Below are positions 1 through 58,839 of a DNA stretch of 64,000 bases, piece after piece (the first letter of the stretch is position 1; every line of letters starts with the position of its first letter). Source of the stretch: Octopus sinensis. Its lineage: Eukaryota. A program made the translations under genes and the position numbers. The stretch spans positions 124,001 through 188,000 of the forward strand of contig NW_021832528.1 in the NCBI RefSeq assembly GCF_006345805.1, in the 5' to 3' direction. The notes beneath the pieces are model-generated. The model was not told where the DNA came from, made no database searches, and saw only the letters and a program-made list of their open reading frames with translations.

Positions 1-1128
1 AAGCAGATTCTATTTGGCTTGTTTCTTGGCCAGTTTGTGTCCTTAGCCATATTCGGGACCTCAATAACAAGCGAATATTTGCAAGAAAAAAATTTTAATG
101 TTCCTTTAAGTAACATATTCATTAAAAATTGTCTTTCTAGCTCAAAATATTTTCTTTTATCTGATCATATCAATTTTTACATGTTCATACAGTCTCTACA
201 AAAAGTTAAATTCAAAAATTTGGATTGTTCTTAAGTAAGTATGTTCTCAAACACTAAGAGAAAATTGGATAGCCTTTTTACTAGTTTCAGTAACAGACGT
301 CGAAGGCAATTATTTGGTAGTGAAAGCCTACAGTAATGCAAATATAACAAACATCCAAGTTAACTTATTTCTATATTCTAGTTAATGGATTCGCTTATTA
401 TTGTCACTGTGTTTATAATCTGTTCTACACTACTCAAAGTTAAATATAAAATTGTGCATGGAATATGTATAATTGCTGTCCTTTTCGGTTCAAGTTGTCT
501 TGTTGTTGGGGATATTTTATTATATGGATATTCAGGTTTTTTGATAAAAAATATTTTTTAGGTTTTAAATCTATTTCTGGACTTGTTTTTGCTTTTTTTG
601 GTTTTGTTAGTTATGGTATTTCTAATGTCATCCAAGAATATATTGTCAAGACTACCAATACGCTACAATTCATGACAATTTTTAGCACATTTGGGTTACT
701 TATAACAGCCGCACAAATGTAGTATATATATGTAATGCCAGGGCTATTTTAGAGTATGAAACACTTAAAAAAGTGCCCTTCAATGGATATATTGGAGGGG
801 CGATTGTCGGATATACCAGTTGTATGATCTTTATATATTCTCTTGTACCTTACGTAATGAAATACAGCGGAGCTTTGATGTTAAATATAGGTGTATTGTC
901 GTCGGATATATTTACGCATATCTATGGGTATATACGACTTCATTATAAAGTATGTATAGGATTAATTTTTAGTTTCATTATTTACATGTTTTTGCGTTTT
1001 TTGTTGTGACGTTTGGAGGTGCGACTTATGCTTTTTATGAACCCGCATCCGAACCTGATTATACACTTTTTAAAAAAATAACAACAGTGAAACAAAAAGA
1101 GAACATAAATGAAATTGATCTTATTTAA
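1..1128 (+). CDS. SLC35F-like solute carrier (5' partial, multi-exon)
   Basis: LGQFVSLAIFGTSITSEYL, AILEYE and YSLVPYVMKYSGALMLNIGVLSSDIF match SLC35F1/2-type motifs. Two 23-nt introns (gtagtatatatatgtaatgccag, gtatgtataggattaatttttag) restore the frame. Stop at 1126-1128. Confidence 0.7.
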
Positions 1129-1749
1129 AAAATATATTTTTATGCTAAGCAAAAGTACATATCTTAGGAATTTTTAAGTTACAAGTCCATTTTCTAACTT
1201 GGACCCACACACAAGAAAAAGAAAAACAAGTAAAGTTAATTTCCCGGCCCTACCTACGATTAGTTAAAAAATTAACTCTTTGCTAAAAATAAAGTGTGTA
1301 TCCTGCCAGTGGGGAGTTATAGAATACTCTGGCTCTGCGGAAAAGGCTATATTATTATAGTTCCATCCCATGTTAATATAATACGTACTATTTTCACTCA
1401 TTCAGGATAAATTAATTCCAACTCTTTCAAAAAGATTCAAAGAATAATATCCCGAGCGGATCCCTCCGTAGTTCCAACTATTAACAATTCCAACTAACAT
1501 TTCGAGGATAATATTTGGATACATTAGCAAATGGCTTCCAAAAAACAAATTCGTTGTGGTCCGAGATAGAATGAACAAGAATTAACGAAATTTAAAAGAA
1601 TTAACAAAAGGACGCCACCGGGAGTGGAGCTTGCCGATCAATATAATATCTTTCTACATTTTCTACACTAAACAATTTTAAAATTTATATTTTTAAAAAG
1701 AATGATTCAATAATCGAAGAAATTAAACAAAATTTTGAAAAATTCTGAA

Positions 1750-2390
1750 GAAATACTTACTTTTCAAGCTGACCAAAGAAAGAAGAAAATTTACTTGTCC
1801 AAGTCTCATCCATTCGACAGAGATTATTTCTCAGAATGGCTTATAGAATTGAACAAAAAATGATTTTGCAAAAAAAATCTAATTTTATTTGATAATGCTA
1901 CTGTACCCTTACATGATTTTGAGATGAGTAGCATCGAACTCTTTTTTCCTCGAAATACAACATTGAGTTATACTTATGATAGCAACGTAGATCACAAAAA
2001 AAGTTACGGAAAAGTAGAATAAATTTACTCTATTGAATTGCTTGATATTCATAAATCAAGCTTGGTTAGAAGTATCGTAATTGATAATTACAAATTGTTT
2101 CAAAAAAGCATTTGAAAATGCGTTAATACAGAACCTGACAGAAATAGAGGAAATAGATGATAAAAATTTTTTGAATCATGATCAAATTGACGACGAAAAC
2201 TTTATACAAAACTTTTGAAAAAACTAAAACAGCAAGACCAAAGTTAGAGAAGAAGATGAAAAAATTTATATTCCGATACTATATGAAGCTAGTGAATATG
2301 CGAAGGCGCATGAATTATGGTTTCTTGAAAATGATTATGAACAAAGAGGAAAAGTATACGAAATACAAAACATTTAAAAAAAACTAATCA
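1750..2390 (+). mobile_element. degenerate pogo/Tigger transposase remnant
   Basis: Broken frames give EWLIELNKK..DNAT, typical of the DDE_1 region. Confidence 0.4.
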
Positions 2391-3189
2391 TTCTCAAAAA
2401 ATCACCGATTACATGATTAATTTGATTCATGTTCTATTTTTTGTTTACGGAAGTCATTAATCCGGATAATTATGTTATAATAGTACGCTGGAACTCTTTT
2501 TTGATCGCGTCAGCCTCTCGCCCAGTAAAGAATCAGCCTTTTTAATTTATTAAATTAATTAATTAATCGTTACCTACAAAACCTTTATTCATTAAAATTA
2601 TGTTAATTCCAGGCCATTAATGTTAATTTAATCAGACAAACTTATCATTTGATCCTAATCTCCCGTTATAAGTGCACAGAATGTCTGGATTTGAAATTCA
2701 AAAATCTCTTTTTACCAAAAATGTTGAAAACTCAAAACCTAATCGAAAAAATCAAATTTTTAATGAATATTACAATTTTTTACAGAAAATGGAGGAAATA
2801 AAAACAAAACTAACTAAAGATACTCCAAGAGAAAATCAACGGCTGCTTCGTACTACAAATTTCAGAAATTAAAATTAAAAGATTGATTAAAATAAAAGAT
2901 TGATTAAAAACACAAATGATACAATTAAATATTATTCTTATATTGAACAAAACTTCAAAATTTGCACGAATGCCATTTATCATTGGGTCATGAAGGTCAA
3001 ATAGAATGATGTATGAGATTAAACAAAAATATAACTAAAGAAATAATTATGATTTATTTGAATTTATGCGAAATAAGGCAGAAAAAGACGAAAATCCCTT
3101 AAAAAAGAATTGTAGTTAGGTCTATTCAAAATGAACAATTTAATTCAAAATGTCAAGTCGATTTAATAAAGAAAAACTCGTTGGAAAGT

Positions 3190-3675
3190 TAAATTAATCA
3201 GAAATTATCGGCCAGCAAACCGGATGGAACAGCTGTTCCCACGCACAACGGCCAACAGGATCCTTTGGATTAGGAATGTAAATTCCCTAGGATCCTTGAA
3301 GCGTAATGAACAGAGGTGGCCAAGTTTCTTCAGATGATCAACTGTCTTTGTGCCAAAGACGCACAAGTCTCAACAACAATTGGCCAAAACCAAAAGCCGT
3401 CTAACAAGCCCTGGTATTTTTCGGATTTTGTATATTCAGCCCTATTAGCACGGGACCCAGGCAGAGAGGCGGATTCGTTGATGGCCGACTTAGAGAAGAA
3501 ATCAACACACGTGGCATCCCAAACTAGTGGTTTACCAGCGTCGAAAGCGAACAACGTCGAGCCATCAGGCCTTTTTCCATCACCACGGTCAAGACCATTG
3601 GCTCAAGGACAGAAGGATACCCTGCCTTTTCGAGGGCATGGAGAATGATCTTGTCTTTTCGAGGGCATGGAGAAT
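3190..3675 (-). mobile_element. CRE-clade non-LTR retrotransposon, 3' fragment (restriction-like endonuclease)
   Basis: [26 protein letters not shown]...PLVWDATCVD...AEYTKSEKY...PIVVET, with one frameshift. Confidence 0.8.
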
Positions 3676-3679
3676 GATC

Positions 3680-4660
3680 ATTTTTTTTAATTATCAAATC
3701 ATTTTCTTGTGGTGCTTCTCTTTGTTTCCTTTTGTCATTTATCGTTTTTATCTTGTACTCACATCCGCTTGCCTTTCATCTCTTTCCACTTTTTATCTTC
3801 TTTAATCCATTTATCAATCTAATTTTCCTTATCGATGACTCTCTGTTCCGTTTGTAACACTTGTAACAAAAGGAAGAAAACCATCCGTTGCGACTCCTGT
3901 GACGCCAGTTTCCATCGTTCTTGTATCAAGTTGTCTAAGAAGTCTGCTTCATCTCTTACTCGTTGGGTTTGTTCTGCTTGTTCCTCTTTCCCTCCATCAT
4001 ACATTCCTCGTGTCATCAGTTCTGAGTCTTCTGTTCCCATTCGTCCTGCCCGCTTCGTGGACCCCTTCCTGCTTAATCCAGAATCAGTCTTAAGACTTGT
4101 TCGAAATTATCGAGCTTCCTATCGTATCCCTATTAGAATTCCCAGATCTGCCCGCTTTTCTGCGGCGAAGGCCTTGTCGGCTTTAATAGAGTCGGTCATT
4201 TGTGACCAGACCATTCCGAATTGGAACCGACTGTTCTGCTTTGCAGTATTTGCCCTCGCTTCCCCAGTTCAAGGTTCATGCTCGAACAAATCCCTTTCCT
4301 CTTCCATCAAAGAAAATATAAATAAGTTCATAAAAGAATCTTTCATTCTGCCGTCTCTTACGGGAAAGTCCAATAAAACAACTTCATCCATTCCTAAAAA
4401 CAACAACCCCATTCGGTTACGCAAACGTATCAACTCCTGCTTAATGGCGCACGACGTCGGTTCTGCGGTCCGCATTCTTTCATCTTCCGATTCCGTCCGC
4501 ACCATTACTCCGGATGTAGTCAAAATTCTCAGCTCTAAGCACCCGACTGGCAATGTGCCTAATTTTTATGGCCAAACTCCAGAGGGGGTCTCGATTGCTT
4601 CTTCGTCTGTCCAGCAACTTTTGTTTGCCTTGAAATCTTTCAGAGGCAATAGTAGTGGTG
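3680..4660 (+). mobile_element. CRE-clade retrotransposon 5' fragment with PHD finger (ORF from 3835)
   Basis: Pyrimidine-rich leader, then a C4HC3 PHD finger (CSVC..CDSC..FHRSC..WVCSAC) and RIPRSARFSAAKALSALI..WNRLFCF. Truncated before the RT. Confidence 0.75.
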
Positions 4661-37808: not shown

Positions 37809-38205
37809 TGTCACATGGGCGACTATGTCGCTATGGGCAGCCAGTCCTTTTACGTGTTTCTATGGAAACCGCAGAAAAGGTATTAAATATTGAATATAGC
37901 AATTTATATATGGAAGAGTGTAGATTAATCAATTATTCTAATTTAAAATTACATTTGAATTATCTTTAAAAATGGCTTACCCAAAAGTATATTAATTTTA
38001 ACAGCGTGGTTACTCACACTTTGTGATGTCTGGGTTTAAGGGTACGTCAGAAATATTAACGAATACAATCAAATTAAGGAAGCGTTAATCGGGATATTCC
38101 CGGAGGATATGAATGCTCGAAGCAAACACCGGTTGGCCAAAAAGGCTTTTAATTTTTGTCAAAAATGTCTGAAGAATCGTCAGCAGAAACATCATTTAAT
38201 TTCGA

Positions 38206-39380
38206 GTTAGGGTTACTTTAGGTTTGGGTTAAGGTTAGGGTTAGATTTTGAATATTTATGTTGTCACTTGCCAACGTTAGGGTTAAGGTTAGATTTTGAA
38301 TATTTATGTTGTCACTTGCCAACGTTAGGGTTAAGGTTAGGGTTAGATTTTGAATATTTATGTTGTCACTTGCCAACGTTAGGGTTAGGGTTAGATTTTG
38401 AATATTTATGTTGTCACTTGCCAACGTTAGGGTTTGGGTTAAGGTTAGGGTTAGATTTTGAATATTTATGTTGCCAACGTTAGGGTTAGGGTTAGATTTT
38501 GAATATTTATGTTGTCACTTGCCAACGTTAGGGTTAAGGTTAGGGTTAGATTTTGAATATTTATGTTGTCACTTGCCAACGTTAGGGTTAGGGTTAGATT
38601 TTGAATATTTATGTTGTCACTTGCCAACGTTAGGGTTTGGGTTAAGGTTAGGGTTAGATTTTGAATATTTATGTTGCCAACGTTAGGGTTTGGGTTAGAT
38701 TTTGAATATATTTATGTTGTCACTTGCCAACGTTAGGGTTTGGGTTAAGGTTAGGGTTAGATTTTGAATATTTATGTTGCCAACGTTAGGGTTTGGGTTA
38801 GATTTTGAATATATTTATGTTGTCACTTGCCAACGTTAGGGTTTGGGTTAAGGTTAGGGTTAGATTTTGAATATTTATGTTGCCAACGTAGGGTTTGGTT
38901 AGATTTTGAATATTTATGTTGTCACTTGCCAACGTTAGGGTTTGGGTTAAGGTTAGGGTTAGATTTTGAATATTTATGTTGTCACTTGCCAACGTTAGGG
39001 TTTGGGTTAGATTTTGAATATATTTATGTTGTCACTTGCCAACGTTAGGGTTTGGGTTAGGTTAGGGTTAGATTTTGAATATTTATGTTGCCAACGTTAG
39101 GGTTTGGGTTAGATTTTGAATATTATGTTGTCACTTGCCAACGTTAGGGTTTGGGTTAAGGTTAGGGTTAGATTTTGAATATTTATGTTGTCACTTGCCA
39201 ACGTTAGGGTTTGGGTTAGATTTTGAATATATTTATGTTGTCACTTGCCAACGTTAGGGTTGGGTTAAGGTTAGGGTTAGATTTTGATATTTATGTTGCC
39301 AACGTTAGGGTTAGGGTTAGATTTTGAATATATTTATGTTGTCACTTGCCAACGTTAGGGTTTGGGTTAAGGTTAGAGTT
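38206..39380 (+). repeat. telomere-motif satellite, about 22 units
   Basis: Core gattttgaatatttatgttgtcacttgccaacg alternates with variable runs of TTAGGG, TTTGGG and TTAAGG. Confidence 0.95.
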
Positions 39381-39590
39381 AAAGTTGTTACAAACTTTGC
39401 AAAAAATTTGATGTAAATTATAATTTGCTAATGTTGCAATTTATATTATCAAAAATAAAAATAATTCACATTATAATTTGCTAATGTTGTAAATAATTTT
39501 ACTATTTTAAAGCAAGCATGGTTCAAATATAAAACATCATTTTCTCAAAAATTTAAAGTTCAATCATTAGTTCGGATCGCTTGCCTTTAT

Positions 39591-41381
39591 CTATCTGGAA
39601 ACATATTCTACAAAAATCGTCTCAAACAATAGGAAAACTCACATGCCAAACATGAATGTTGAAATCCTACTAAGGAAAAAACAATGTCTAAGGAACAAAC
39701 TCCGGCGCTGCGCAGATTTTCGTGACCGGTCCGTTTTGGAAAGTGAAATCTTCACCATTACGGAAGAAATAAGAAAATCGGCGAAGGTGGCGAAGGATAA
39801 AAAATGGAATACTGAGTGCAAAAAGCTACATAAAGGAAGTCCAAATTTTTGGAAGGTCTACTCGAAATTAACCTCGACGTCTGAGAAAACTATACCTAAA
39901 CTGCTAAAACAAGATGGATCCCCTGCATCTCATGAAGAATCCCGAACATATTTGCTGATAGTCTCAAAAGAATACAAGAAGTCAATCCGGATACAAATCT
40001 ATCTGATTCAGCTTTGTTTGATATGGAAAAAGAGTTGGAAGACAATCTTAGCTCATTACCAATGTGCTCGGAATCTATAACGTGCAAAGACGTGGAAAAT
40101 GCAGTTAGATACTCCAAAAATAACGCTCCGGGAAAGGACAAGATAACCATGCGCATGTTCAAAGAAGCTCCCAAGCAACTTTACGAATATTTGGGATGTC
40201 TCTTCTCCCGCAGTGTGAGCTTGGGATACGTCCCTTCTTCATGGAAACTGACGGAGGTAAGGATGATACGGAAGCCTGGAAAACCTGGTTACTTGGCGAC
40301 AAGTTATAGGCCTATAAGCCTAATTCCTACCATCAGTCGAATAATGGAAAGGGTAATGTTTGAACGACTCTCTGAACACGTCGAGAGAAATGGTTATCTC
40401 AAAGACGTGCAGTGGGGCTTTCGGAGGGGTCGTTCCTGTGCTGACTGTCTTTATACACTCAATTCGTCGATTGTAAAGGCTCTGGATTTCAAAGAGTGTC
40501 TGACAATTGTGTCTCTAGACATCTCAAAAGCCTTTGATATGGTTTGGCACCTCGGTCTCCTTAGACATCTGGCGAAGTGTCACATAGACAAGGACTATTC
40601 CTATGGCTAAAAGACTTCCTCCGCGACAGGCGCTCTGTGATAAGCTTTCTGAACTATGACTCGGATGAACTGAAACTTAAAAGAGGCGTCCCTCAAGGAT
40701 CAGTCCTCAGTCCTCTATTATTCAACATTGTGATGAGCAATCTGCCGTCTCTGTCAACACACGGACGGAAATTTTGATATACGCCGATGATGTTGTAATC
40801 CTTGACATTTCATCGAAACCTGCCTTATCCGAACAAAGGATTATATCATATATGAATACAGTGGAGCAATGGTGCGATGAAAATATGTTCATTATTGCGC
40901 GTGAGAAGTCGCATTACTGAGAATCACAGAAAGCAGAAATTTAATAAATTTACCGTGCCTGATCAAGAACATACCTCGACAAAACTCAATTAAATATCTT
41001 GGCTTGTTCATCGATGAAAAGGGAAACTATCTCGAAAACGCAAAATTAAGTAAAAGGAAAGCAACTAATGCTCTGTTCTGCCTGAGGAAGTTAAATTTGG
41101 AGCCTGATACTTCCTCTACGTTTTCAATACGGTGATCCTACCGGGACTACTATACGGAAAAGAGGGATGGTACTTCTCTAAAAAGAAGGACACCATCTTA
41201 ACTAAATTTGAAAAGTCTCGCAGGCTCGCTTTGAAGCTTGCTTACCACCAAAAAGTTGAAGATCCAATCCCCCTGTGGCTTGAAAGTAAATCCTCCATGG
41301 TCGGTGAAACTGTCGAAAAAGCTATAAGTGGTTATAAATCCAACTCAATTGTCACTGGACGTACCTGCAGAGGTAGAAAAG

Positions 41382-41421
<40 letters not shown>

Positions 41422-41547
41422 ACTTGAGGGGGTCTCTTTTTTTTTCTGGGAAGAAGTCGATAGGGTAGTCCTATTGTTTCATTATACAAACTCCCCCCTA
41501 ACCTTTAACCCTTCTCTGTTTCCAATAAAACTTCCTTCCTTCCTTCC
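39591..41547 (+). mobile_element. Jockey-like LINE copy 1, 5'-truncated, many indels
   Basis: Nearly identical to 42834-44782. RT motifs YRPISL, QWGFR, SLDISKAFD, GVPQGSVLSPLLF, YADD. Ends with AATAAAA(CTTC)n. Confidence 0.93.
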
Positions 41548-41557
41548 TTGCCTTTAT

Positions 41558-44500
41558 ATGCCCGATTAAAGGAAAAACTGAGAAAAAATGTATAAACTGC
41601 GGTCTGAGTGGGCATTTGGCTTGCTACGGTGGCTGCTCTTCAGCTAAGGCAGCCACTGAACACTAAAAAAGCAGCTCAGTGCCAGGGACAGACTGGCCAA
41701 AGCAGAACACTCAAAAACTGTATGGTCAAAAGCGGAGGCCGTTGAATCTGTATGGCGAAAACCCACAATTTCCCGCTGTTTTGACTCCTCAACGCAAACA
41801 GATGTTAGTGAAGACGCAACTTTGCCTCCCAATACACAACACACAGAGCCTCCAACCCGCTTTAAGAGGAAAGCACCAACTATCGACGTTGAGCTTACCT
41901 CTATGATTCGCAAAATAATCGCTATATGCGGTGAAAAAGGCCTCGATATCAACAATCTGTTGTCCCTTTCTCTTGGAGGGAAAGGATTGATCAGGCGTGA
42001 GCCCCTTTCTGTCTATTATCGCTGTGAACGCACGTTCTCTAAAGAGAAGGCGTTCAGAGATTGAGGATATGTTATCCCATAACCCCGTGGACTTTTGATC
42101 GTAAACGAAACAAAAATCAAAAAACATGATGATTACTACTTGGATGGCTATCGTTCCCTTGATATTAAGTGGAAGCCGGGCTCGATCGCTGGAACAGGCA
42201 CTTCTATCTACTACAAATCAACTCTAAGGGTGAAAAATCTAAAAATTGTGTCCGAGGAATTGTGTGAATTCCTCACAATCGACGTCCTTCTGGAAAAAGG
42301 GTGGGTAACAATCGGAGGGATGTACTCAAAATCCCTTTCCAATTATTCATCGCTTATCAAGGACTTTTTTGCCGATAAACACAATCATTTGTCAATACTC
42401 CTCGGGGATCTAAATGCCAAATGCACATCTTTTGGCTGTCTGAGAACCAACAGGGATGGCATCATTCTTAAGAAGCTTTCAGAATCTCTCAGTTTCTCGG
42501 TCATCACATCAAAAACCCCAAATCATTACTCACCAGGAGGGTGGGACTATTTGGGCGTAGCATTGGTCTCTATGTCTACTCTTCAATTTATGGAACAACC
42601 GTACACCTTAAATGATATTGGAAGTGACCATCTACCAATTTTATACAAACTCAACCTTGGACCTTTAAAGGGTAAACCAACTTTTATACGATATAACCTC
42701 TCGACTATAAACTGGGAACACTACCGAAAATGTTTTACACTTTATCTGAGCAATTTCGCTCCTAAACTTGACGAAAATTCTTCATCTGAGGACCTCGAGA
42801 AGTCTAGCAATTCCCTTATTGGATACATAAAGTCTTATCTGGAAACATATTCTACAAAAATCGTCTCAAACAATAGGAAAACTCACATGCCAAACATGAA
42901 TGTTGAAATCCTACTAAGGAAAAAACAATGTCTAAGGAACAAACTCCGGCGCTGCGCAGATTTTCGTGACCGGTCCGTTTTGGAAAGTGAAATCTTCACC
43001 ATTACGGAAGAAATAAGAAAATCGGCGAAGGTGGCGAAGGATAAAAAATGGAATACTGAGTGCAAAAAGCTACATAAAGGAAGTCCAAATTTTTGGAAGG
43101 TCTACTCGAAATTAACCTCGACGTCTGAGAAAACTATACCTAAACTGCTAAAACAAGATGGATCCCCTGCATCTCATGAAGAAATCCCGAACATATTTGC
43201 TGATAGTCTCAAAAGAATACAAGAAGTCAATCCGGATACAAATCTATCTGATTCAGCTTTGTTTGATATGGAAAAAGAGTTGGAAGACAATCTTAGCTCA
43301 TTACCAATGTGCTCGGAATCTATAACGTGCAAAGACGTGGAAAATGCAGTTAGATACTCCAAAAATAACGCTCCGGGAAAGGACAAGATAACCATGCGCA
43401 TGTTCAAAGAAGCTCCCAAGCAACTTTACGAATATTTGGGATGTCTCTTCTCCCGCAGTGTGAGCTTGGGATACGTCCCTTCTTCATGGAAACTGACGGA
43501 GGTAAGGATGATACGGAAGCCTGGAAAACCTGGTTACTTGGCGACAAGTTATAGGCCTATAAGCCTAATTCCTACCATCAGTCGAATAATGGAAAGGGTA
43601 ATGTTTGAACGACTCTCTGAACACGTCGAGAGAAATGGTTATCTCAAAGACGTGCAGTGGGGCTTTCGGAGGGGTCGTTCCTGTGCTGACTGTCTTTATA
43701 CACTCAATTCGTCGATTGTAAAGGCTCTGGATTTCAAAGAGTGTCTGACAATTGTGTCTCTAGACATCTCAAAAGCCTTGATATGGTTTGGCACCTCGGT
43801 CTCCTTAGACATCTGGCGAAGTGTCACATAGACAAAGGACTATTCCTATGGCTAAAAGACTTCCTCCGCGACAGGCGCTCTGTGATAAGCTTTCTGAACT
43901 ATGACTCGGATGAACTGAAACTTAAAAGAGGCGTCCCTCAAGGATCAGTCCTCAGTCCTCTATTATTCAACATTGTGATGAGCAATCTGCCGTCTCCTGT
44001 CAACACACGGACGGAAATTTTGATATACGCCGATGATGTTGTAATCCTTGACATTTCATCGAAACCTGCCTTATCCGAACAAAGGATTATATCATATATG
44101 AATACAGTGGAGCAATGGTGCGATGAAAATATGTTCATTATTGCGCGTGAGAAGTCCGCATTACTGAGAATCACAGAAAGCAGAAATTTAATAAATTTAC
44201 CGTGCCTGATCAAGAACATACCTCGACAAAACTCAATTAAATATCTTGGCTTGTTCATCGATGAAAAGGGAAACTATCTCGAAAACGCAAAATTAAGTAA
44301 AAGGAAAGCAACTAATGCTCTGTTCTGCCTGAGGAAGTTAAATTTGGAGCCTGATACTTTCCTCTACGTTTTCAATACGGTGATCCTACGGGACTACTAT
44401 ACGGAAAAGAGGGATGGTACTTCTCTAAAAAGAAGGACACCATCTTAACTAAATTTGAAAAGTCTCGCAGGCTCGCTTTGAAGCTTGCTTACCACCAAAA

Positions 44501-44782
44501 AGTTGAAGATCCAATCCCCCTGTGGCTTGAAAGTAAATCCTCCATGGTCGGTGAAACTGTCGAAAAAGCTATAAGTGGTTATAAATCCAACTCAATTGTC
44601 ACTGGGACGTACCTGCAGAGGTAGAAAAGAAAAAAAAAAAAAAAAAAAAAAAATTTACTTGGGGGGGTCTCTTTTTTTTTCTGGGAAGAAGTCGATAGGG
44701 TAGTCCTATTGTTTCATTATACAAACTCCCCCCTAACCTTTAACCCTTCTCTGTTTCCAATAAAACTTCCTTCCTTCCTTCC
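41558..44782 (+). mobile_element. Jockey-like LINE copy 2: ORF1 zinc-knuckle tail plus APE-RT ORF2
   Basis: KCINCGLSGHLACYGGC (gag-like). ORF2 from about 42000: IIAVNARSL, NETK, LGDLNAK, GSDHLPI, then RT motifs through YADD and IKYLG. No RNase H. (CTTC)n tail. Confidence 0.93.
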
Positions 44783-44890
44783 TTGCCTTTATATTAGTTG
44801 GCCTTTTAGTAATATTTGCTATGTAGTTGCCATGGAAACACGTAAAGGCCAGGTTGCCCATAGGGGTCTGATCACCCATGTGACAAAATA

Positions 44891-47364: not shown

Positions 47365-48149
47365 TGTCACATGGGTGATCAGACCCCTATGGGCAACCTG
47401 GCCTTTACGTGTTTCCATGGCAACTACATAGCAAATATTTACTAAAAGGCCAACTAATATAAAGGCAAACGATCCGAACTAATGATTGAACTTTAAATTT
47501 TTGAGAAAATGATGTTTTATATTGAACCATGCTTGTTTTAAAATAGTAAAATTATTTACAACATTAGCAAATTATAATGTGAATTATTTTTATTTTTGAT
47601 AATATAAATTGCAACATTAGCAAATTATAATTTACATCAAATTTTTTGCAAAGTTTGTAACAACTTTAACTCTAACCTTAACCCAACCCTAACGTTGGCA
47701 AGTGACACATAAATATTCAAAATCTAACCCTAACCTTAACCCAAACCCTAACTCGAAATTAAATGATGTTTCTGCTGACGATTCTTCAGACATTTTTGAC
47801 AAAAATTGGAAGCCTTTTTGGCCAACCGGTGTTTGCTTCGAGCATTCATATCCTCCGGAATATCCCGATTAACGCTTCCTTAATTTGATTGTATTCGTTA
47901 ATATTTCTGACGTAACACTTAAACCCAGACATCACAAGTGTGAGTAACCACGCTGTTAAAATTAATATACTTTTGGGTAAGCCATTTTTAAAAGATAATT
48001 CAAATGTAATTTTAAATTAGAATAATTGATTAATCTACACTCTTCCATATATAAATTGCTATATTCAATATTTAATACCTTTTCTGCGGTTTCCATAGAA
48101 ACACGTAAAAGGACTGGCTGCCCATAGCGACATAGTCGCCCATGTGACA
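47365..48149 (-). mobile_element. TGTCAC-ended MITE (empty copy, 785 bp), TSD TAATA
   Basis: TAATA|TGTCACATGGG...CCCATGTGACA|TAATA. Reverse complement of the 37809-44885 element with one satellite core and an uninterrupted target site at 47459-47468. Confidence 0.95.
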
Positions 48150-54035: not shown

Positions 54036-55103
54036 GAAGTTTTGTATCTTGTTGATTTGTTTGAAGAATATGCAGTTCAGAAAATCAAGAATTATAAGGG
54101 GAATAAATTATTATTATTTACCTAACTGTATTACAAAATATTTTATATAAATACTTGAAATTCAAAATTAATAATTTTAAAACAATAAAAATAAAACTCA
54201 AAGAACATAATAACTTATTAAACATTTTTAAAACTTACTTTTCATACAAAAAACATAATATTACATTAAAAAATTATTCGTTCAACAATTTTTCATGAAA
54301 TCCATATATTGTGATATTGTTCGAAGAACTTTCCAACATAAAACAGAATAATCAAATAAAACAATTCATTGATTACATAATGGTTCATTGATTACAAAAA
54401 TAGCACCGTTTTATCTTGCTGCGGGAAATGGGAGCAGCTCATTCAAACAATTCGAATACTGGTTTAGTTTCCCAAAAAGTTAATTTTCTTACTCCGGCTC
54501 TTTGTGGTGTATGTACCAATGCAATTTTATATATTTTGTACTAGTATCTTTACATTGTTTTATATGAATTTTTGTTTCTTGTTCTTGTGACCTCATGTCT
54601 CGCAAAAAATTGAGGCGACCTTGGTATTTCTGAACTGAATTAACTGCAATACGTTTATTTAAATGGCACTTTGAAATTGTCGACCAAATTCTGAAAAAGA
54701 TTCGGGTTTGTGATGTATAATATAGGAGGGTAAGTACTTTGTAAATAAGAAAGTAATCAATAGTCTACATCACATACATTCAAAAAACATATAAATCTGA
54801 GAAACTTCTGTTCTATTTCAAAAACAAAAAAGTTTTCTATCACTTAAGATCGACCGATTTCCCCATTTAAAGAGAAGTGGATAAGCAGTCGCTTACAAAA
54901 CTTTATTTGTTTTTGGCTAGATTTTGCATTATGAAAAGTTTCATTGGTAATGTAAATCAAAGAAGATAGGGGATTCACTTTTAAAACATATCGTACCAGA
55001 CAGACTTGATGTCTTAGGACGTCAAACGGTGACAAGTTTAATTCCACGAATACTGCCGTACTCAACAATCTTAAACATACTCTTCACCCAACAGGAACAA
55101 AAA

Positions 55104-55221
55104 ACGTACGACACTGTTTGTTCCCAGGCGGTCACCCAGCCAAGTACTAGAACAGCCTGTAATCGCTTAACTGCCGTGTTCGGATGGGAACGGGTATTTA
55201 CGACTAAGTATGATCGTACAA
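55104..55221 (-). rRNA. 5S rRNA (divergent)
   Basis: About 118 nt. 5' GTACGAT pairs with 3' GTCGTAC. Internal AGTTAAGC and CTAGTACTTGGCTGGGTGACCGCCTGGGAA. Followed by a T6 Pol III terminator. Confidence 0.88.
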
Positions 55222-58476: not shown

Positions 58477-58839
58477 TTAATTATTTTTTTTGCCTTTATT
58501 GGCAACAATAAACTCATCATAATGATCTCTCCTTTTACGTTCAAATTCCGACAATGTCCGTTTTGGTTCCTCAAGTTTGACTGCACTCTCCTGACTACAA
58601 ACAGGGGAGGTTACAGTCTCCCACACTGCGCCTGCAAAGTCGGGTTGTTCTTCTGAGGTCGGGACTGTGCTTGGTTCGAAGGGAGTCTTTGGTTCGTCTA
58701 TTTTCATATGTCCGTAGTCCTTGTCGATTGGGTGGAGAGTCGCCAAAACATTCATTTCATCAAAAGTTTGAGTTTTACAAGATTTATTTACTGAAGGATT
58801 CTTTTTTAGAATACCACGAGGATTTCCTTGTTCTGACAT
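58477..58839 (-). CDS. PPP1R2: protein phosphatase 1 inhibitor-2
   Basis: [42 protein letters not shown]. Confidence 0.9.

Follow-up and report, generated by a model that had tools for sequence, protein, structure and literature searches.

Within a 64-kb stretch of the Octopus sinensis genome (hereafter the window, which is part of contig C8999 in a 2.72-Gb assembly; coordinates given without a contig name are positions in it), two copies of a long interspersed nuclear element (LINE) stand one behind the other inside a miniature inverted-repeat transposable element (MITE), with the 10-mer TTGCCTTTAT before, between and after them. We found that the LINE family to which these copies belong is site-selective and that TTGCCTTTAT is a genuine re-used target, the third of at least three. 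The tandem itself is probably the product of two separate events of target-primed reverse transcription, by which a young, low-copy LINE with an apurinic/apyrimidinic-type endonuclease (APE) would have inserted twice at one and the same nick in a TGTNR-ended (Ginger2/Tdd-like) MITE.

Two truncated LINE copies inside one MITE

The arrangement originally predicted for this locus, in which TTGCCTTTAT at 39581, 41548 and 44783 brackets two LINE copies, is the one that we found. The prediction also held in naming an empty MITE with a single 10-mer and two differing 5′ truncations, one in the linker between the endonuclease and the reverse transcriptase (RT) and the other among the zinc knuckles of the first open reading frame (ORF1). 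The features of the locus are the following.

37809–39580, + strand: left arm of the host MITE (family C), recognised by a terminal-repeat match at 37809 and 48127, by tandem repeats and by an inverted-repeat match to the empty copy
39581–39590, + strand: target-site duplication, first copy, TTGCCTTTAT
39591–41547, + strand: LINE copy 1, 1957 bp, 5′-truncated at about position 2005 of the 3953-bp element
41548–41557, + strand: target-site duplication, second copy, common to both LINE copies
41558–44782, + strand: LINE copy 2, 3225 bp, 5′-truncated at about position 727
44783–44792, + strand: target-site duplication, third copy
44793–44885, + strand: right arm of the host MITE, ending in CCCATGTGACA
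47365–48149, − strand: unoccupied MITE of family C, 785 bp, with a 5-bp flank repeat (TATTA) and a single TTGCCTTTAT at 47459–47468

The 10-mer occurs five times in the window (the three positive-strand copies and the negative-strand copy listed above, and one at 58490–58499), against 0.3 expected, and a count of five was reached in 0 of 100 shuffles. The fifth occurrence has unrelated surroundings, with neither MITE nor LINE context, and is a chance occurrence. Across its one 10-mer the sequence of the empty MITE is uninterrupted. The left arm of the occupied MITE starts at 37809 with the terminal repeat TGTCACATGGG and contains a 1.16-kb minisatellite (38221–39381) of 102/209-bp units with TTAGGG-like motifs; the number of these units is about 11 in the LINE-bearing copy and about 1.5 in the empty one. 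From the nick to the MITE end the distance is 103–104 bp, or 93 bp by the way of counting used in the original prediction.

Copy 1 of the LINE starts at about residue 247 of ORF2, in the linker between the APE domain (residues 5–182) and the RT domain (residue 473 onward), and in copy 2 the truncation falls between CCHC knuckles 2 and 3 of ORF1. Copy 2 comprises an ORF1 remnant, an ORF2 with APE and RT domains that runs from about 42000 to about 44625 and is broken by 1-nt indels, an internal poly(A) and a 130-bp 3′ end. In each copy one extra base, C at 39591 in copy 1 and A at 41558 in copy 2, separates the 10-mer from the start of LINE homology, and both copies end in AATAAAACTTCC(TTCC)3, directly followed by the 10-mer. 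When aligned over the 1.96 kb that they share, the copies differ by eight one-base homopolymer indels, by the length of the poly(A) and by one substitution (A at 41427 in copy 1, G at 44662 in copy 2). In all copies of the LINE the internal poly(A) tract (41376–41420 and 44625–44653 in the window) measures about 30–45 nt and is followed by another 130 bp up to the real 3′ end; the shortest copy that we saw, L066, starts inside it.

Full-length copies elsewhere in the genome begin about 727 bp upstream of the start of copy 2, which makes the element 3953 bp long. The naturally open copy L056 translates into an ORF1 with three CCHC knuckles (a zf-CCHC match) and an ORF2 with an N-terminal AP-type endonuclease (PF14529, PF03372) followed by an RT (PF00078); ORF2 is open for 766 residues in this copy and, judged by the position of the stop, measures about 880 residues as a whole. 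Domain analysis of L056 found no RNase H domain. An exact 25-mer of the LINE 3′ end has 64 matches genome-wide. After AATAAAA the copies carry one of two tails, (CTTC)n or (CCTATT)n, which define two subfamilies, and no copy has a terminal poly(A). Across 27 copies there are 37 variable columns in 1.4 kb and substitutions are nearly absent, so the family must be very young. In run X5, labelled as another species, we also saw a 288-bp and a 469-bp piece of the LINE without substitutions (at 43253–43540 and 44115–44582 of the window); these pieces suggest that the family is common to, or very recently separated from, a close relative.

Recurrent insertion at three MITE sites

We read the 3′ flanks of 44 of the 64 copies, together with many of the 5′ junctions, and counted as empty sites the exact matches in the assembly. 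The copies are distributed as follows.

Site A: AAGCC followed by TGGGTATTTGT; 13 of 44 copies; 40 exact empty sites in the genome
Site B: TATGT followed by CGTTGTGATTG; 8 of 44 copies; 12 exact empty sites
Site C, the site of the original prediction: CGY followed by TTGCCTTTAT; 5 of 44 copies; 21 exact empty sites
Site D: a fourth repeat, with insertions 20 bp apart; 2 of 44 copies
Other: varied sites; about 16 of 44 copies

Site A lies within a MITE of about 610 bp, and most junctions fall no more than 3 bases from the position given (in L013 the junction is 7 bases upstream). Site B lies within a second repeat, also a MITE, and the five copies at site C are the pair in the window, its counterpart on contig C12603 and a single copy on contig C2292. 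Copies at the same site are independent, because their 5′ truncation points or their tails differ. These points are 1, about 50, 1448, 2128, 2632, 2731, 2758 and 3745 for site A; 95, 775, 1873, 2471, 2859, 3044 and 3447 for site B; and 161, 727 and 2005 for site C, so that the sites record at least eight, at least seven and at least three independent events, respectively. Each of the three is used by both tail subfamilies. At site C the (CCTATT)n subfamily is represented by the C2292 copy, which occupies the equivalent position in a diverged MITE of family C, with TTTGCCTTTAT on both sides, and which bears out the prediction that the 10-mer in this family is re-used. We thus observed directly, at the junctions, recurrent insertion at the same nucleotide with independent truncations.

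The position of the first nick holds to within a few bases, while the flank repeats range from 0 to 13 bp overall; at site B they span this whole range, and at site A they measure 4 to 13 bp, apart from one copy that has none. Target-primed reverse transcription by sequence-selective endonucleases is known to leave such a pattern, in which the first nick stays constant and the second varies. With an endonuclease domain in ORF2 and 26 of 44 copies at three sites, the element is, as had been proposed, an APE-type LINE with real target selectivity. The further proposal that it targets one site holds insofar as TTGCCTTTAT is a target, but only 5 of the 44 copies are there, while 13 and 8 are in two other MITE families and about 16 elsewhere. 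Likewise, tabulating the 3′ flanks brought out shared target sites, most copies nevertheless not being at TTGCCTTTAT. Exclusive or near-exclusive use of a single target is therefore not what we found; there are three differing hot spots besides the scattered sites. The possibility that TTGCCTTTAT is part of the LINE's own 3′ end, which the prediction had named as a ground for refutation, was rejected, the 10-mer following just 5 of the 64 3′ ends.

Right junctions of site C number 39 in all, of which 31 are preceded by the MITE's own bases and 8 by other sequence, this LINE's tail accounting for 3 of the 8. At five others (C900:9993, C10703:77257 and 106912, C12471:70177 and 84863), TCT, CTT, ATT or TAT replaces the CGN of the MITE, and these junctions may mark further occupants, perhaps from other LINE families. 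Among the copies at varied sites, that of L029/L064 lies in a sequence resembling the homologue of site C in a related repeat. On C12605 an intact CGTTTGCCTTTAT has a LINE 3′ end 28 bases upstream of it; this copy, near site C rather than at it, was not counted.

The MITEs that carry the three sites end in TGTCGCG...CGCGACA (family A) or TGTCACA...TGTGACA (families B and C), all of the form TGTCR...YGACA, in agreement with the consensus TGTNR...YNACA. Their flank repeat is 5 bp long, TATTA or TAATA (TAWTA), in 8 of 10 copies of family A and in all three complete copies of family C; in family B, where the reading covered the right end alone, the flank is likewise of the TATTA/TAATA kind. Termini of the form TGTNR...YNACA, short AT-rich duplications and the target RTATAY are marks of Ginger2/Tdd transposons, whose flank repeat is 4 bp in animal members and 5 bp only in TDD-4/5 (PMC2836005). 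The termini of the host MITEs are thus alike, and the flank repeat is AT-rich but 5 bp long, in contrast to the 4 bp reported for animals; from these features the MITEs look Ginger2/Tdd-like. In all three families the LINE site is in the subterminal region of the same MITE end, which the LINE 3′ end faces, at a distance of 93 bp (family A), 104 bp (family C) or 114 bp (family B).

How the three sites come to be chosen could be explained in more than one way. When the last 200 nt and the first 150 nt of the LINE were compared with the three target regions on both strands, the similarity was no better than with shuffles, so that guidance by RNA–DNA pairing beyond the 2–3 bases of the tail is unsupported. 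Known RNA genes were rejected as targets, there being no Rfam match in the target MITEs. One rather speculative reading, to which we give a small chance, is that this LINE lineage is specialised on the subterminal region of one DNA-transposon superfamily and would find its site other than by plain endonuclease read-out, through a positional or structural cue that the transposon end provides, or through a separate DNA-binding module that reads a degenerate but conserved motif. If that were true, the retention of a fixed 5′ leader through template jumps (see below) would be a second unusual trait of the lineage.

Origin of the tandem

We propose the following route to the tandem. A nick in the bottom strand at the left edge of TTGCCTTTAT, made by the endonuclease of the element or by some other part of its protein that reads DNA, would prime cDNA synthesis on the repeat tail; a cut in the top strand about 10 bp downstream would then lead to duplication of the 10-mer. 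Each flank would then keep a usable core target, in one of which the second element would land. The order target, LINE, target, LINE, target would be expected because an insertion that duplicates the 10-mer offers the core target again on either flank. The family uses at least three such hot spots, which lie 93–114 bp inside one and the same end of their host MITEs, in addition to the scattered sites.

Other head-to-tail pairs exist in the genome, and it is because of these, and of the unequal flank repeats in one of them, that two successive insertions appear to be the best explanation. On C9535, two copies at a variant of site A are accompanied by the flank repeats CAGGTATTT, CAGGTATTTGTCA and AGGTATTTGTCA, which differ in length and therefore fit two insertions with one first nick and two different second nicks. 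On C9587, two 3′ ends are 3.2 kb apart and, by coordinates, the next copy starts 11 bases after the first. A third locus (L068, C8318:260307–265831) has three LINE 3′ fragments 1.3 kb apart, two of which share their truncation point and 5′ flank while their 3′ flanks differ; it reflects duplication or recombination at the DNA level on top of insertions. In three further cases (L033 on C12597, L063 on C4852 and L067 on C8223), the 3′ end of another LINE family is found directly upstream of this LINE, with a tail such as (TTACC)n or CTTTCCATTCATTCC after AATAAA, and in L033 a site-A duplication stands between the foreign tail and this LINE. Such head-to-tail pairs of different families suggest that sister families use common hot spots.

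Some 5′ junctions bear an additional sequence. At seven independent ones, a leader of 20–37 nt with the core GAGTATTTTGCATTGTGCCATCCAGCCC stands between the upstream flank repeat and the LINE body (L016/L071, L023, L033, L060, L066 and L068/L069; also L070 and L072). The truncation points of leader-bearing copies range from position 1 to 3828, and the left edge of the leader is fixed while its right edge varies. The leader also heads a different LINE family (L070), and in a sister LINE of 69% identity it is found about 790 bp upstream of the zinc-knuckle region, where the 5′ end of that element is expected. A degenerate 19-mer for it has just 19 matches in the genome. It is present neither in the LINE body nor in the MITEs, and it has no Rfam match; since the leader loci have none either, known RNA genes were rejected as its source. 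Our best guess is that the leader is the true 5′ terminus of the RNA of this clade and that it has survived template jumps or internal deletions. In the rotifer LINE Hebe, internal deletions that leave the 5′ end in place have been described (PMC2861651).

The original prediction offered either two insertions or a template jump on RNA that included the flank, and the C9535 pair favours the former. By the latter, a single event would have sufficed: the RT would have copied one RNA as far as the ORF1 knuckle, jumped to a second LINE RNA (a read-through transcript ending in the tail and TTGCCTTTAT) and copied this one to the endonuclease–RT linker. That the two LINE copies are nearly identical, with identical tails and 10-mers, is compatible with such a jump, and switching clearly happens in the family, as the foreign leaders and the chimeric 5′ ends at junctions attest; in addition, no flank repeat is visible between the other-family tail and this LINE on C4852 and C8223, and only 11 bases separate the copies on C9587. 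However, the jump needs a source copy that was already in the same MITE site and a transcript that ended exactly at the end of the 10-mer, the identical tails are uninformative in that (CTTC)4 is the usual tail of the subfamily, and the middle flank repeat on C9535 is longer than the left one, as is simply explained by sequential insertion. Being the less economical, this account seems to us improbable. Alternatively, one insertion could have been followed by rearrangement of the DNA, either a tandem duplication of LINE plus flank repeat or an unequal exchange, and then by deletion of the 5′ part of the upstream copy. The triple repeat on C8318 does show that LINE-bearing segments are duplicated, but in the window the deletion would have had to end exactly at the 10-mer, with the one-extra-base junction typical of ordinary 5′ truncations, whereas truncation points that differ and yet each abut the target are what independent insertions produce. 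For this last reason a simple tandem duplication fails to explain the locus, as the prediction had already argued, and its more elaborate form is extremely unlikely.

A false tandem could also arise in assembly, if two alleles whose insertions at one site differ in length were chained or if repeats induced a mis-join, and 1-nt homopolymer errors are indeed many in this assembly. Against this, contig C12603 shows the same order and spacing as the window and has the copy-specific G at the position of 44662, yet differs from the window by 14 substitutions from 45423 onward, in the outer flank. Because of these substitutions farther out, C12603 is a separately assembled haplotype or a recent duplicate, and because it repeats both the structure and the copy-specific substitution, and similar tandems exist at other loci, we hold an artefact to be very improbable. 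Most differences among LINE copies are 1-nt homopolymer indels, which are probably assembly noise since they vary even between the twin contigs. Short-read contigs have one extra base at the homopolymers at 43777, 44388, 41661, 41976 and 42091, as does C12603 at the first two, for which reason the frameshifts of copy 2 may be assembly errors rather than real mutations. Finally, one might deny targeting altogether and have the LINE insert at a loose T-rich motif, the shared sites being due to chance or to survivorship in neutral repeat DNA. Of the roughly 16 copies in varied sites, several are at words like GTATTTGT or TGTCGTT, which hints at a short degenerate preference; but a word of 8 bp cannot concentrate 26 of 44 copies on three nucleotide positions that are each present a few dozen times in 2.7 Gb, nor can survivorship fix the exact nucleotide, and we consider this hardly conceivable.

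Several observations weigh against insertion in two separate, targeted events. The tandem and its internal junction are spanned by none of the short assembled contigs that were compared with the locus. Its three 10-mers are identical in length, as are its two tails, so that the locus, taken by itself, would look the same after one complex event as after two separate ones. No obvious long motif is common to the three hot-spot sequences, and their alignment is unconvincing. About one-third of the copies are in other sites, which makes the specificity looser than that of R1 or R2; the flank census covers 44 of the 64 copies, and some copies may be allelic duplicates on alternative contigs.

Apart from these elements, the window contains a complete 5S rRNA gene (55103–55221, − strand; Rfam RF00001, 101.7 bits).

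Comparison with known site-selective LINEs

By its domains, the element seems to be an APE-type LINE of the Jockey/R1/I kind, in a broad sense. Its best named protein relative, at 40% identity, is from Octopus sinensis. RT relatives at 35–39% identity are mostly proteins of about 900–920 residues with the same domains, many of them from arthropods, and one of these matches bears the automatic name 'mobile element jockey'; the nearest protein-atlas cluster is automatically named 'type-1 retrotransposable element R1', which we take as a lead only. A search of solved structures returned generic L1 and R2 RT matches only, and the R1Bm and TRAS1 endonucleases did not appear in it. The original label 'Jockey-like' is apt only if taken broadly (an ORF1 with CCHC knuckles, a PF14529-type endonuclease, an ORF2 of about 880 residues and no RNase H), not as regards the 3′ end. 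Members of the Jockey clade are alike in having an ORF1 with three CCHC knuckles and an ORF2 of about 900 residues with APE and RT and no RNase H, whereas the present element has (CTTC)n or (CCTATT)n in place of a terminal poly(A) and a strong site selectivity.

To the R1 clade (R1, TRAS, SART, Waldo, Mino) the likeness extends from the proteins (APE and RT in ORF2, a gag-like ORF1 with three CCHC knuckles) to the manner of insertion, with a fixed first nick, a roughly constant flank-repeat length and head-to-tail arrays at the target. A Cys-His motif in the C-terminal region of ORF2 is a feature of that clade; in the window copy none was seen in the roughly 90 residues translated after the RT, where the frames are broken by indels. 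The targets differ, in that they are MITEs here as against rRNA genes, telomeric repeats and microsatellites, and so does the host, a mollusc. Furthermore, several unrelated-looking targets are used here, with a third of the copies elsewhere. The endonuclease domain of R1Bm is described as cutting both strands of its own target specifically (PMC1919474).

The closest functional precedent is Tx1L in Tx1D of Xenopus, from the Tx1 clade of the L1 group, which reportedly occupies a fixed site inside a DNA transposon family and forms composite elements. Both are APE-type LINEs that prefer a fixed site inside a DNA transposon family. The Tx1 clade has an L1-type ORF2 of about 1,200–1,300 residues with a C-terminal CCHC. 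Here, by contrast, ORF2 has about 880 residues with a PF14529-type endonuclease and its nearest RT relatives, of about 900 residues, are not L1/Tx1-like, tetramer or hexamer repeats form the tail, and there are at least three MITE targets rather than one. Judged by size and domains, the element is not a Tx1-type LINE. Transposons are a recognised target class of target-specific LINEs, of which the APE-type ones belong mainly to the R1 and Tx1 clades (PMC4640811).

In its behaviour, then, the element resembles site-specific APE-type LINEs, a known style. What is unusual is that a single young family inserts at three different MITE sites, similarly placed in their hosts, and often forms tandems, both among its own members and with other families; a literature search of partial coverage found no cephalopod precedent. 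For programmable, RNA-templated insertion of genes, site-specific LINEs are the natural models. Those known to date belong for the most part to the R2, R1 and Tx1 lineages, and their targets are rRNA, telomere, small-RNA-gene or microsatellite sequences. Because it is young and almost undiverged, with three defined MITE targets, clear empty and filled sites and repeated tandems, the present family offers a tractable case in which to learn by what means one APE-type LINE recognises several targets and what portion of a target is sufficient for re-insertion. It also provides an instance, from a cephalopod genome with its little-explored transposon biology, of one class of mobile element that uses another as a safe landing pad.

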